From contig CAJFCJ010000004.1 in assembly GCA_904063045.1 (NCBI GenBank), forward strand, positions 675,713 to 739,712: a stretch of DNA of 64,000 nt, in the 5' to 3' direction. Position 1 is the stretch's first letter. Each line of letters starts with the position of its first letter. This stretch comes from Dimorphilus gyrociliatus (lineage: Eukaryota; Animalia; Annelida). Made by a program: the position numbers and the translations under genes. The notes below the pieces were generated by a model. The model was given only the letters and a program-made list of their open reading frames with translations. It was not told the origin of the DNA and did not search any database. Shown in pieces: positions 9,171 through 15,850 of the stretch.

Positions 9171-9622
9171 AATGTAAAAGTGACATACTATCGAGGTCTT
9201 TCGAATTCCGGAAATCAAACTGCCTTTGGCAAAAAACGGAATCTTGCCGATGGTTTTATTCTTACATTTTTAGGCTTACTTTTTAAGTACAAGTCATTAT
9301 TTTATTATCTACATCATTATTCAATAAAAATGTAATCGCAATTTATATTTCTTATTGAACATCAACTTTTACAGGGGCATTGTTTTATCAATATGTCTAT
9401 TAGTACGTCTGTTGTTGGTAACTTGTAGGATATAATGAGATTTCTACTTCAAATATTTAAATGGAAAAGGCTAAATATATAAATGACTAGCCCCGCTAAA
9501 GTCCTCATTTGTGGATATGCTAATTGTTTTTCTTCGACTGTCTTAAGTTAACACTTCCTATCGCGAAAACGAACAACTTCTCTAATTCATCAAATAAACA
9601 TTTATTTTTAAACCATCATTTC

Positions 9623-10289
9623 TTACTGAGGTTGTCCACCACCGCGTCCGAATCCTGATCCTCGTCCTCTGAATTGGAAATCTTGGGTAGATCCAGCGCC
9701 GGCTTCAGCGACCTTATCTCTTCTGTAAGCTGATCTTTCAGCATCAGCGCTAGCTGCGGCTCCTGATCTTGCTGCTTCTGGTTTCGGTCTTGGGCGAGCG
9801 GTCTCGGGTCTATTTTGTCTCTTCAAAGTAGCAGGGACGATCTCTGGTGGTAGACCCAAATAATCACGTAAATATTGGACACCGTCGTTGGTGAGGTACC
9901 TATAGAATGAAATGTCGTTGTAAATACTTTCTTATCTAGCAATGGGGCAAGACTTTCAGTTGACAATTAGTTGAACATTTTATGTTACAGCGCAATGTCG
10001 TCTGAGCAATGGAGAAATGCAATAGCACTTACCAATAATAGTGACGCCAAGCAAATTGTTCGGTCACGTAACCTCTAGATTTCAAAGACTGAAAAATAAA
10101 GAAATTGGATTTGAAGCTTTAAAAAAACAAATTTTCATTTCCACGCACTGTAAGAGCTTTGATAACATGAAGGTTAGGGACTGCCACATCCGGGTGCTTT
10201 GGGGAGAAAAAATCCTTCTTGGCAACCATAACACCTTCGTTGAAAAGGTATTCGTATATAAGTTGACGATTCTTCTTGGGCATCAACAT
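9623..10289 (-). CDS. RPS10: 40S ribosomal protein S10/eS10 (3 coding exons, introns about 10148-10089 and 10032-9900, plus a 5'UTR intron 10486-10291)
   Basis: [26 protein letters not shown]...[11 protein letters not shown]|[19 protein letters not shown]|[27 protein letters not shown]...[13 protein letters not shown]. Confidence 0.97.
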
Positions 10290-10514
10290 GCTGAAAAAAT
10301 ATGTCATTACTACATGTTGGGGGCGATAATAGGAAGAGGTGGTAACGTGTTGTATTTTTACGTAAAAACTTCACAAATTTTTAAATATTTCTGGTCAAGA
10401 ATATGTGTAATGTTATATTATACACAAAAAATGACTAAAATTTGAGAATAAACATGCGTTAAACTGCAAAATTTGTCATAAAGTACCTGACGGCGTGCAA
10501 CAATCCGAAATCTC

Positions 10515-10528: not shown

Positions 10529-11351
10529 TGGACGCCGTATTTCCACGAGACTTAAAAATTCCACGTGACCGGAAAGAACTTGATGGCGCGAAATACGGCG
10601 AATGCAAACCTGGCATTTCCATCAACTCGAGATACTGCTTCACAAGAAAGTAATAATAATTTGGATAAATTGAAATAGATGGATGCTTGATTTAACAATC
10701 TCTGAAACCAAGATACTTATCAACTATGGTTTGTGTAATAAGGTATTCCGTAACTTATATAATATCCAGCCAATTGTATATAAAGAGTCGGGCGAAACCG
10801 GTTAATTTTTGTCCTCCACCGGTTGTAGCGTAGTCAATTCCATTTAAGCTCTTAATAGTATTCCACTGAAAGGATATGAATCAGAACACTGTTAAATATT
10901 TTCTATCTTTAAGTGCCTTAAAGTCACGAAGCTGTTATTTTTTTCACGAAACCTAACAAAGTAAGTTTGGACGTAAAATTTTTTAAGGGTTACTATATTC
11001 TCTAATTATAAGAGAAAAAATATGGTTAAATGCCAATATAAGTGTCAATGTAACAAAAAGTAATTGCATTAACCGAAAGAAATGGTTTATTGTTGTTTTC
11101 TGTTGAAAATAGCAAAAGTGACGTGTATTGTATATGTGCAAAACGACATGCTTTGCTACAGGTTTATTGTTATTTTCTATATTAAGCCTATATTGCTAAA
11201 GCGTCAGTGCTTCTATGTTATATGCATTGAACCCGGATATATACGAAAAAACGCAGCATCACGTGACTAGCCGTTAACCGCCATGTTATTACGTAAAGTT
11301 ATATAACCCATTCTGTCAGTCTCTTTTTCACTGCACATTCCTGCAATACTC

Positions 11352-11368
11352 TGACCTTCTCGTTACCT
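11352..11368 (-). promoter_or_regulatory. DR5 RARE-like element AGGTAA-N5-AGGTCA in the RAR 5' region
   Basis: Plus strand TGACCT tctcg TTACCT: one perfect and one single-mismatch half-site with 5-nt spacing. Confidence 0.45.
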
Positions 11369-11858
11369 CTGCAATATTATTTTTTTTACAACATGATGGT
11401 TGATTTTTCTGATGTATAATAATAAAGGTAAGCTGCAAGTAAAATGAACGGATTCTACTATGACTCAAAAACGATTTAGACATTCGAGTCTATTTACCTG
11501 TCAACAACTAAATATAGGCTTAATTTTTTTGTTTAAAGCTATGGAGAATATAAGTAATTCGTAAATATGATTGCATAACTGATAGAACGGACAATTTTTG
11601 GCGAAATATGCAAAAATTGGCTCTGTTTTTATAAATTCTAAAAATAGTACATGTAAACGAGAAGGGGCGTCTGTAAACAGAAAAAACGGCGGTGTTTGAA
11701 AAGTGAAAGTTTTTTCGACCAGACTTCACACAGCTGCGATTCTTATCTGGGAAACAGTCTATTTTTTCATGGTGAATTGGTGAGAGTACAGAAGAAATTT
11801 TTTATTAGCTTCGAGAGTAATTCATCGATCGATGCGCGTACGCAAGATGACGTAATAA

Positions 11859-11870: not shown

Positions 11871-11943
11871 GTTTCGTTTATCTTTGAAATATTATTATTA
11901 ATATTAAAAAAAAACTTTTTCCGACAGATTATGACCGTGGAAG

Positions 11944-14913
11944 ATGTATCAGCATGTTAGTGAAACAGGGAATGGAGCGGATGCTCAGCCAAAACAACCT
12001 GTAACGAGTACAAACGTCTCAACAGGTAAGGCAGTTTATCTATTAAATAGTATTAACACTGGACAATATATTTAAAATATTTCAAATTCGCAATATGGTA
12101 GGGCTACTTGGGAAGTGTATCATTGACATTAAATTTCATTCATACTGTTTCTATTCAGGTGATACTATAAAAGCCTTGTATTTCTTCAATATACATGTAC
12201 ATTGTAAAATACTCTATGCGCCATGTATGCATTTGGAATTTAAGGAATGCAAATGGTATTAAATTCTGAAAAAATTTCAACGCCTCATTGAATTAAAATC
12301 ATTAATATTCTATGTATTTAAATGAAAATTAGAGATTTCAATTTGGATAAGGGAGTTTATTAATACAGACCTGTCATTGAAGTACTTAATTCACTATACT
12401 TAGACTATTATTTGTAGCAAAAGCTTTGTTTGTTCGAAAGTCACCATGTATATTTCTCCCACGGTTAAAGTGTGCTCCCTTCAATTTGAATACTATTGCA
12501 TTGACCCATGAAGGACGAGACATATTTTGAAATATATCTGTAACCCCAACAGAGAAATCGGATTCGCAGACAGGTTTTACGTTTCATTGCCAAAGTGACA
12601 GCAATGCTTCTTTTCATCAAACTCCACCACAATCACCCTACTCTACAAATCATCATACTCCTGTTGCAATGCAATCACCTGAAATAATTTTCTTGCCCAA
12701 CGATGATACGCAGTCGTTTGATCTTAGTCATTTCTCCAATACTGATGATTCCCAGCTACAAATGCCTACAAATATGCTACCTCCACCAGTCCCTATTAGT
12801 CAATCGCCTCCACCACCTCCACGGATATATAAACCTTGCGTAGTGTGTGGGGATAAGAGTTCTGGATATCATTGTAAGTATTCAATTGTATTTTTACTAT
12901 GTTTATTGTTTATGAATAGCTATTTGTATAACTATTAGAACTTAACACTTTGATAAAAGACGGATAATTTTATTTGCAAATTCGTGCATTTCTTCAACTG
13001 TTATCGGTAAATGTACAAAGCACATACTTTGCGTAAACAAATACGCTCTTATTTGTAAATGCTAAGTCGGAAATCTACAGACAGTGCTCTGTTGTTAAAG
13101 TATATACACTAAGAGAGTATATACAAAAGTTTATGACTGCCATCTGGCGTCTCCACTCTATTCTGTCGATTGGAAATTGCTTTATTTTTTCCAGACTAGA
13201 GCAACTGTCATCTTTCTATATAAAATTACTATACCCGGAAGGTATTTTTCGTAATATCAACGCCAATTTTCTTATCAATATTTCTTATTCGTTGGAAAGA
13301 AACTGGCAATTAGTTTTCAAACAACTACCTTGTACATAGCTGTATGCTTTTACCTATAACTTAATCCAAATTCCTTAATTAATTCTATTACACTTTTCAC
13401 CAGATGGCGTATCATCCTGTGAAGGTTGCAAGGGTTTCTTTCGAAGATCCGTGCAGAAAAGCATGCAGTATACTTGTCATAAAGAAGGAAAGTGTCAAGT
13501 TAATAAAATAACCAGGAATCGATGTCAGTATTGTAGATTTCAGAAATGTTTCGACAAGGGAATGTCAAAAGAAGGTATTCTATAATTCTGTTTGTAGTCA
13601 AACTGTACACTAATCTTATCGATCTTTAAGCTGTGAGAAATGATAGAAATAAAAAGAAAAAGCAGTCAAAACAAGAAGGAGCCATTTCTCAGTCAGCGGA
13701 AGATTTGAGTCCAGAGGAAGAGGAGATAATTAACAGGGTACAATTTGAAGTGTATTATTTTTGCAAACTTAAAATAAATAATTTTCCATTATAATTATCA
13801 AGGTAGTACAAGCGTACGAGGAAACGATTTTAAGCGATGATATCGGCTCATTTGATGAAGAAGCGTTAGGAACCACAAATGGAAATGGTGCTCATCGAGC
13901 GAATGGTGATAAACCATCAAAGCTCAACGTCAAAGATCAAGTGGATGAAGCTTTGGAGAATGGAACCTTAGTTTGGGGTGTTCTCAAAGAATTATCCACT
14001 CGGGGACTAGTTCAAATCGTTGAATTTGCAAAAAGAACGCCATCTTTCAATTCCATTACAACAAGTGATCAGATTGTGCTTATAAAAGCTGCCTTATTGG
14101 AAATTCTGGTTTGTTTTTAGTATTTTATTGGCAATCTTTTTAATGATTTGATAAAGCAGTCTTTTATCTTAATAAATGAAGTTGTAAATTTAAGTAGAGT
14201 TTTTTGCAAACTACGTGCGAAAGAATAAATAAATATATCTAAGTATATTTAAATAATAACACTTAGTTGATTGTACAGATTATAAGACTCATCAGCTCTT
14301 ATTCGGATCTGGATAATGCACTCTCATTTGATGGTGGCGTGATGTTGACAGATAAACAAGCTGCTGCTTGTGCTTTCAGTCACGTAGCTCAAAATATTTT
14401 CCGTCTCGCCAAACAATTTAGCAATTATGATATGGATTCAACTGAGTATGCTCTCATCTCTGCGTTATGTTTGTACAGTTCAGGTGAATAGTAAAAATTT
14501 TCATTTCTATATGTTTATTTATAATTTATTTTATAATTATCTATAGATCATTATACATTAGAACAATCGGATCAGATAGATAAGATTCAGGGACCTATTC
14601 TGGCTGCATTTAAGCATTATTCAAGGAGAAAGAGAAGGAATAAACCTCATATATTTACGGAGATGCTTTTAAAATTAGCCGATTTAAGAGATATCAGTAT
14701 AACTGGTAAAGTTTATAGATATCTTTTTTTTACCAACCTTTATTTAATGATAACATTTACAATTTTTTAGGTGCAGAATGCATTTTAGATTTAGCTCGTG
14801 AAAGAAAATTTGAATTACCTGCTTTAGTTAAAGAGATGTTTACTAGAAATGAAAATGTCTCACTACCTCCACACGTTATTAACAAAGGTCTTTTATTCAA
14901 ACCGTCAGTATAA
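11944..14913 (+). CDS. RAR: Retinoic acid receptor (NR1B), about 8 coding exons
   Basis: [21 protein letters not shown]|[26 protein letters not shown]...[24 protein letters not shown]|[12 protein letters not shown] is RAR-type from the pre-DBD region through the T/A box. The LBD contains [32 protein letters not shown] and AF-2-like LPALVKEMF. The start ATG is inferred. Confidence 0.92.
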
Positions 14914-15850
14914 ATTGTTACTTGATTTTATATATAGAAGCTTGTATTATTAACTTTTCAAAAAATGTTACAGGTCTTTCAAGCCCATTAAAAAGGAAAC
15001 AGGTTGACCTGCATGTAATTTTAAAAAATATTTTATACAATACTGATATACATATGCTTATATCTATGTATAATGTGAGAGAATTATTGTTTTTCAAAAA
15101 CTCCTTTTTGATATTTCGTTTCATGGTTTTCCATAGATATTATCAGTACAACAGGGTATATAATTATCAACTGCAATTTTTGACCAATTTTAGTGAGATT
15201 TTTATATCATATAGAGGACCGGTGATTAAATTATACATGAAATTTAACAAGTATATGGTGCACAATTACTATACTTTCTACCTCATATTGTACATCTTAT
15301 AACTTAGTCTCTTTTTATATTTTGCTAAATAAACAAGAATTAATTTTATTATGTTCTTATTGCATATTAAAAATTGTTAGATTTTTAATAAATCATGCAT
15401 TTTCTTTTCTTTTATACTTTTCTTACTTGAATTAAGAAGAGTTTTTTTGTTATCTTTCTCTCTATCTCACCCTCTCTCTGTGAATTAATGGATATGTAAG
15501 TTAAATAAAAAAGAAGTTGCATGCGAAATTTTTATAAAAGAAAGAAGTATTAAAAAGAGATAACACGGCTATTTTCCGCATTTGAGAAAGTATGCTTTGA
15601 AGTCTTTTTTCTTTTTTTTTGCACTGATGAATTAATTGTTATTCGTTTGAAAATTATAGCCTATATTGATTTCTTTTTACTTGTGTATTATCTTTTTTTT
15701 ATTAAATATATTTAGTACAGGTGACTTAATTAATCCTTTTTGATTATTCTGTAATATTCAAATGTATTAGAAAACATTTTTTTATGGACGGATTAATAAA
15801 TTTTTGAGACAATATATAAAAATTGTATAAAGAATAATAGAAATAGTCTT

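Follow-up and report, generated by a model that had tools for sequence, protein, structure and literature searches.

Within a 64,000-nucleotide stretch of contig CAJFCJ010000004.1 (forward strand, positions 675,713 to 739,712; assembly GCA_904063045.1; hereinafter the window, to which plain coordinates refer), the miniature annelid Dimorphilus gyrociliatus carries its single, transcribed orthologue of the retinoic acid receptor (RAR; NR1B), in which both residues that anchor the carboxylate of retinoic acid (RA) are replaced. Judging from the alignments set out below, we give slightly better than even chances to the reading that this RAR is insensitive to RA, or nearly so, and serves as a ligand-independent partner of RXR of the kind proposed for molluscs, a condition that would have arisen independently within annelids.

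Both carboxylate anchors are replaced

The carboxylate of RA is bound in RARα by R276 and S287; the equivalent residues of RARγ are Arg278, which forms a salt bridge, and Ser289, which forms a hydrogen bond. In place of this chordate-type clamp (Arg278 plus Ser289), the worm receptor has a Ser (TCT, 14297..14299, + strand) at the Arg position and an Asp (GAT, 14330..14332, + strand) at the Ser position. These are the very codons singled out by the original prediction, which had been made from the letters of the window alone, and both are the same in transcripts from two public runs, namely X2 (2017; one contig of 1864 nt) and X1 (an unrelated coral metatranscriptome of 2024; four contigs). The exon that bears them (exon 5) was aligned by two methods. 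With the HMMER program phmmer it ran gap-free against the structure of the Platynereis dumerilii RAR (6eu9; ILRLASRYDDKEDTMSFSNG) and against the three human receptors (RAR alpha, beta, and gamma), and the Tyr, Phe, and Gly that flank the Ser and Asp found their counterparts; a MAFFT alignment with 122 other RARs returned the same columns and placed no basic residue of the worm protein in that of the anchor Arg. Across these 122 RARs the Arg column is occupied by R (117), K (2, in Lingula and Tubulanus), C (2), and Q (1), with Ser in none; the Ser column is occupied by S (104), A (7), T (4), N (2), M (2), P (2), and G (1), with an acidic residue in none. Two further departures that had been read by eye, CAFS for AGFG/GGFG and GAECI for GAERV, likewise appear in the alignment. 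The core of activation function 2 (AF-2; LPALVKEMF, 14815..14841, + strand), which the prediction took to be retained, is indeed kept, both as read from the sequence and in the alignment, along with its charge-clamp Glu. The literature on which the prediction leaned, concerning the role of the anchors, the low-affinity RAR of Platynereis, and the unresponsive RARs of molluscs, agrees with published work.

Identity as the NR1B orthologue

The assignment to NR1B draws on several parts of the protein. The DNA-binding exon encodes an RAR-type C4 zinc finger (Pfam zf-C4, E 3.6e-23) followed by an RAR T/A box and, as anticipated from its appearance, is highly conserved, being 75–84% identical to the DNA-binding domains of RARs. 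When this exon was searched against 1.84 billion representative proteins and names were looked up for the best single-domain full-length matches, all of those looked up were RAR-named or annelid RAR-like (79–84% identity; Ridgeia, Tubulanus, Haliotis, Physella, Babylonia, tunicates, and vertebrates); an identical protein was absent from the results of this search. A BLAST comparison with 150 representatives also places the ligand-binding domain with RARs. In exon-by-exon phmmer searches of PDB, exon 4 recovered RARs first (37–41 bits; next family the estrogen receptor at 26 bits), exon 5 recovered Platynereis 6eu9 first (40 bits, E 3.1e-09), with vertebrate RARs at 23–25 bits ahead of the thyroid hormone receptor (TR; 21 bits) by only 2–5 bits, and exon 6 recovered RARs at 40–45 bits, followed by TR at 29 and Rev-erb at 19. 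Exon 7, too short a piece, gave no significant PDB match; it shares 48–56% identity over 32–33 residues with lophotrochozoan RARs, and the C-terminus aligns to the EMLDRAENVCIP end common to annelid, mollusc, brachiopod, and priapulid RARs, including the protostome-RAR pattern E-M-[LF]-x-R-x-E-N-V-x-[IL]-P. A maximum-likelihood tree, into which the exons were entered as separate fragments and which had no TR outgroup, set exons 4, 5, and 6 inside the canonical RAR clade (support of 81 in the SH-like approximate likelihood ratio test, SH-aLRT), apart from the RAR-like receptors of rotifers, nematodes, and tardigrades; the DNA-binding fragment (exon 2 in the tree) found no resolved placement.

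Exon 5 is single-copy in the 77.9-Mb genome, and searches of that genome with exon 5 and with the Ridgeia RAR ligand-binding domain uncovered no second RAR. The Ridgeia search did bring up two paralogous NR1H-like genes of the EcR/LXR/FXR type, L003 (G000:C7:3437711-3440905) and L002 (G000:C1:61758-64952), whose ligand-binding domains score, exon for exon, about as high against the Ridgeia RAR as the RAR gene itself; both were ruled out as further RARs by their DNA-binding domains of EcR/LXR type. A strong single-exon match to a ligand-binding domain at C7:3019586 is a candidate RXR. The worm gene was not among the best 120 of 1157 database matches to the Ridgeia ligand-binding domain, and a database search with exon 5 gave no matches; relatives from the Dinophilidae were not recovered.

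Could the gene be something other than a working RAR, namely a product of misassembly, a pseudogene in decay, or a receptor of another NR1 family? The closeness of the NR1H-like genes in the per-exon scores and the unplaced DNA-binding fragment would suit such a reading, but it is very improbable and already largely refuted. Misassembly and pseudogenization are both ruled out, as the spliced transcript of the gene occurs in two independent runs with both anchor codons unchanged: the reading frame is open, splicing is correct in both, and the differences between runs are synonymous at three of four sites. Membership in another family is countered by the per-exon identity to RARs (45–47% versus 39–40% for the NR1H-like genes), by the EcR/LXR-type DNA-binding domains of those genes, by RARs being the top PDB match for three ligand-binding exons, and by an RAR hinge together with the C-terminal motif of protostome RARs.

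A strongly diverged ligand-binding domain

From helix 3 to helix 12 (H3–H12) the ligand-binding domain is only 39–46% identical to that of any RAR, about 45% in the case of the sampled annelids Capitella and Ridgeia; the domains of Capitella, Ridgeia, and Owenia, in comparison, are 65–75% identical to each other and 55–59% to those of mammals. Among 84 columns conserved in at least 95% of RARs, 31 (37%) are changed in the worm, as against 0–5 in other lophotrochozoans and 13 in both Priapulus and Saccoglossus, which makes this domain the most diverged among the lophotrochozoan RARs sampled. Most of the changes are conservative: a negative BLOSUM62 score attaches to only 6 of the 31, the replacement of Arg by Ser being one of these 6. 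The acceleration seems specific to the domain, given that the DNA-binding exon is ordinary and that two metabolic enzymes, the ALDH2-like and ALDH1L proteins, score high against their human counterparts (688 and 799 bits, respectively), although few genes were compared.

Retinoic acid machinery in the genome

The genome contains three genes of the RPE65/BCO (carotenoid oxygenase) family, one ALDH1L gene, an ALDH2-like gene on contig C29, and a second ALDH1/2-class gene on contig C28. The C29 gene scores 688 bits against ALDH2 and 671 against ALDH1A2 in PDB, scores that cannot separate a retinal dehydrogenase (RALDH) from ALDH2. The C28 gene (L043; G000:C28:20124-23573, - strand), which is 56% identical to the C29 gene and sits no more than about 21 kb from the beginning of its contig, is a candidate retinal dehydrogenase; a literature search for published channel-signature residues of ALDH1A found none.

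Among the approximately 47 cytochrome P450 loci, motif probes (FGGGxRxCxG and GGHETT) and inspection of the least paralogous members identified no CYP26, a result that is not evidence of its absence. The FGGGxRxCxG probe hit two non-CYP26 P450s only, and the GGHETT probe matched nothing. One candidate, L074, was rejected with CYP3A4 as its best match, and the C-terminal piece of L088 was uninformative, having no CYP26/CYP120-like best match. An orphan multi-exon P450 without a close paralogue (L063; G000:C3:1910000-1912500, + strand), with an unusual heme-loop motif (FGTSRRNCIG) and an N-terminus reminiscent of CYP26/CYP120, looks CYP26/CYP120-like by eye and in the Atlas, where cyanobacterial P450 fragments are the nearest matches; in PDB it matched only weakly or below significance, which leaves it no more than a lead. 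The proposal to look for aldh1a and cyp26 was in this way answered in part, with BCO and ALDH1/2-class genes present, CYP26 not identified, and a RALDH not separable from its relatives.

Comparison with characterized and uncharacterized RARs

The P. dumerilii RAR (6EU9), an annelid NR1B orthologue and the structure that exons 4 and 5 both match best in PDB, binds all-trans retinoic acid (ATRA) and 13-cis RA with low affinity, at micromolar levels, and its activation is strongly reduced by the V356F mutation (PMC5821490). In its crystal with ATRA the ligand is turned by about 90 degrees (PMC5821490). The worm receptor has the same arrangement of domains and, at the Phe230 position, a small residue of the protostome type as well, but it has Arg, Ser, and Asp where Platynereis has Lys236, Arg278, and Ser289, and Leu where Platynereis has Val356.

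Mollusc RARs do not bind RA. The receptors of Nucella lapillus and the oyster Crassostrea gigas keep the anchor Arg, unlike that of the worm, and their failure to bind has been attributed to a few other residues of the pocket; RA binding can thus be lost while the Arg stays. The RAR of Reishia/Thais clavigera, like that of the worm, is devoid of the anchor Arg, having Cys instead. In contrast to the 31 of 84 conserved columns changed in the worm, mollusc domains show 0–2 such changes, and position 289 is not acidic in any of them.

The Priapulus caudatus RAR has Ala at Ser289 and nonetheless responds to retinoids, with low affinity (PMC6947571). It resembles the worm receptor in its non-Ser residue at 289 and in an Arg at the Lys236 position, and differs in keeping Arg278, in responding to retinoids, and in being less diverged (13 of 84 columns). 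Among annelids, the Owenia fusiformis RAR (P0182, listed as 'unnamed protein product') likewise lacks the anchor Arg, with Cys in its place; it differs from the worm receptor in its retained Ser289 and its conservative domain (2 of 84 columns). In the literature searches made we met no mention of this Cys and found no functional tests of the Owenia RAR. The RAR-like receptor of another spiralian, the rotifer Brachionus, combines, as in the worm, an RAR-like DNA-binding domain with a very diverged ligand-binding domain; its group falls outside the canonical RAR clade, whereas the ligand-binding fragments of the worm fall inside. Only 3 of 25 pocket residues are conserved in the rotifer receptor (PMC6947571). 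We found no papers on retinoids or nuclear receptors in Dimorphilus, and the genome paper and its supplements are silent on both.

What the receptor may do

The worm RAR would still act as a transcription factor with sequence-specific DNA binding, most likely seated on direct-repeat elements together with RXR. The high-affinity mode of RA binding known from chordates would be impossible for it, because the ligand carboxylate would find no Arg with which to form the salt bridge and would lie where an acidic side chain now stands. It would accordingly be expected to regulate genes without RA as ligand, in the manner of the tested mollusc RARs, or at best to act as a very weak retinoid sensor. 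Such a loss would be independent of that in molluscs, since the Arg is present in Platynereis, Capitella, Ridgeia, and Lamellibrachia, as is the Ser except in Capitella (Thr). This much of the original prediction, which had proposed an independent loss of RA binding, fits the replacement of both anchors and the retention of AF-2; the loss itself does not follow from two residues alone.

Several observations temper the RA-insensitive reading or weigh against it. The first group concerns the anchors themselves. The Arg has also become Cys in O. fusiformis (P0182) and R. clavigera (P0195), so the loss in the worm is not unique, and Ala, Thr, or Asn occupies the Ser site in many protostomes; the aligned sequences indicate that the carboxylate anchors are labile across protostomes. 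Given the rate of the domain, the chance that both sites change is about 0.14 or more; with 37% of the conserved columns changed and the Ser289 column only 85% conserved, two changed anchors are not beyond chance, and the alignment indicates that they are part of the general acceleration of the whole domain. In the Platynereis crystal, moreover, the ATRA carboxylate makes no noticeable hydrogen bond to the conserved R/S pair (PMC5821490), and because it bypasses these residues the loss of the anchors need not abolish the low-affinity mode of annelids. Other points concern the pocket. Basic residues persist near the carboxylate site, as an Arg (CGG, 14001..14003, + strand) at the Lys236 position of RARγ and an Arg (AGA, 14285..14287, + strand) at the Arg274 position, which is invariant in the 122 RARs. 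Over 25 pocket positions of the RARγ structure, only some of which are given in the cited literature, about 15 hold the usual residue (among them W227, L233, S234, L268, L271, I272, R274, L275, F288, F304, G393, L400, L408, and M415). The changed ones are of mixed sizes (F201I, V230L, L307V, R396C, V397I, I412V, and L416F), with no systematic filling by bulky residues, so that the cavity is not filled; a pocket with some 15 of 25 positions kept and no bulky filling fits one that is still used. The presence of carotenoid oxygenases and two ALDH1/2-class genes means that retinoids may well be made. Lastly, the tree support for the ligand-binding exons comes from short, separate fragments.

These points lend themselves to two other readings of the pocket. 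In one, which we regard as possible though rather unlikely, the receptor is a low-affinity retinoid sensor working in the Platynereis-type mode, in which the carboxylate lies between H3 and H6 and the ligand is held loosely by van der Waals contacts, so that the Arg and Ser are dispensable. Besides the Platynereis crystal, in which the carboxylate is free of hydrogen bonds to the R/S pair, this would accommodate the Priapulus RAR, whose residues at 289 and 236 are Ala and Arg and which responds at 1–10 µM, as well as the mostly kept hydrophobic residues of the worm pocket and the carotenoid oxygenase and ALDH1/2-class genes. It fares less well with the bulkier Leu at the position of Platynereis V356, with the 31 of 84 altered columns, and with the Asp added to the pocket; further, that other annelids keep the Arg, and most the Ser, despite what the crystal displays suggests that the anchors matter in some state. 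In the other reading, to which we attach little credence, the pocket has been retuned rather than lost: the Asp, the kept Arg274, and the Arg236-equivalent may form a new polar end at which Asp289/Arg274 (or Arg236) reads a non-acidic lipophilic ligand, be it neutral, hydroxylated, or basic (a retinoid alcohol or a retinoid aldehyde, for example), or the Asp may act as a built-in carboxylate that takes the place of the ligand's and holds the receptor in a single state. Pairs of an acid and an Arg that read a hydroxyl are known in steroid receptors. An acidic residue unique among the 122 RARs, the fall of the net pocket charge from +3 to +1, the unfilled cavity, and the retained AF-2 and charge clamp (the Lys of H3 and H4 in EFAKR and LIKAA and the Glu of H12 in LVKEMF all align intact) would agree with it. 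However, protostomes differ from one another at the Ser289 column (A, T, N, M, P, and G), the change to Asp lies within the general drift of the domain, and the exon 5 search found no relatives in which the Asp could be seen to be conserved. The switch to a neutral or basic ligand, which the original prediction had offered as its alternative, is thus compatible with the Asp and gains no support from anything tested.

The worm RAR bears on a current debate about the ancestral RAR, which may or may not have sensed retinoids at low affinity, and about the number of times that ligand binding was lost. Annelids have so far provided one responsive RAR (Platynereis) and one outright loss of the gene (the leech Helobdella); the worm would add a third annelid state, in which the RAR is kept, expressed, and predicted to be competent for DNA binding, with a pocket remodelled without the canonical anchors. 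The Cys at the Arg site of Owenia points in the same direction, namely to an anchor that is evolutionarily labile in protostomes. The worm RAR would add a further case to a kind already known from molluscs (snails and oysters), and it fits the pattern reported for the Dimorphilus genome, in which ligand sets are simplified and receptors retained. A retuned pocket, if that proved true, would mean an RAR that changed its chemistry and not simple decay. Dimorphilus is culturable and has a small genome, making functional work practical; without such work, the receptor is one more diverged invertebrate RAR.

Gene structure, transcripts, and surroundings

The RAR gene was first read by eye and then checked against public transcript reads. 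It spans approximately 11.35–15.3 kb of the window on the + strand, in AT-rich animal DNA with short introns, all of them GT..AG and exactly skipped in the X2 contig and the X1 contigs (joints 12025|12553, 12873|13404, 13574|13631, 13737|13803, 14108|14279, 14483|14547, and 14705|14771). The 3′ part of a 5′ untranslated exon (11396..11427, + strand; donor GT at 11428) matches the loose-end consensus (11396–11425) that both runs show before 11926, with 77 loose letters in X1, and this exon probably starts near 11351. The start codon at 11944, from which a product of about 505 residues is predicted, lies in the next exon (11928..12025, + strand), joined by GT..AG in both X1 and X2 (12019/12025 to 12547/12553) to the exon for the A/B domain and the beginning of zinc finger 1 (12553..12873, + strand; its joint to 13404 is seen in X2). 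The DNA-binding-domain exon (13404..13574, + strand), with the P-box CEGCKG, is followed by that for the T/A box and hinge (13631..13737, + strand), identified by transcript joints and by BLAST matches to RAR hinges. The ligand-binding domain is divided among four exons on the + strand: exon 4 (13803..14108), from H1 to H4/5 with KAALLEIL as its last residues, resting on PDB matches and transcript joints; exon 5 (14279..14483), which begins after a CAG acceptor and covers H5, the beta-turn, and the region up to H8, including both anchor positions; exon 6 (14547..14705), from H9 to H11; and exon 7 (14771..14903), which runs from H11 to H12 and carries the C-terminal motif of protostome RARs. 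An optional final coding piece (14974..15007, + strand) is supported by a joint (14903|14974) in X2 only; this last intron (14904–14973) alters just the tail beyond H12, which reads ...FKPSV* when the intron is kept (stop at 14914–14916) and ...FKPSFKPIKKETG* when it is spliced (SFKPIKKETG). The 3′ untranslated region extends to at least 15307.

The X1 contigs hold the RAR mRNA (window 11926–14878) at about 99.6% identity, and a Dimorphilus-like worm evidently lived in the coral sample from which they came. Relative to the window they carry four coding differences, each within the ligand-binding domain: three are synonymous and one changes Ile to Val; this synonymous excess is a weak hint of purifying selection (P ~0.05).

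Two short upstream reading frames precede the main ATG, one in the 5′ untranslated exon (11394–11420; ATGATGGTTGATTTTTCTGATGTATAA) and the other (11931–11960) overlapping the main start codon. At the extreme 5′ end of the known transcript lies a DR5-like element (AGGTAAcgagaAGGTCA, 11352–11368, - strand) with one mismatch to RGKTCA-N5-RGKTCA. Its location is suggestive; the match itself is weak, the window containing one such site at one mismatch where 2.2 are expected by chance. Directly upstream of the RAR gene is a ribosomal protein S10-like gene (9616–10307, - strand).

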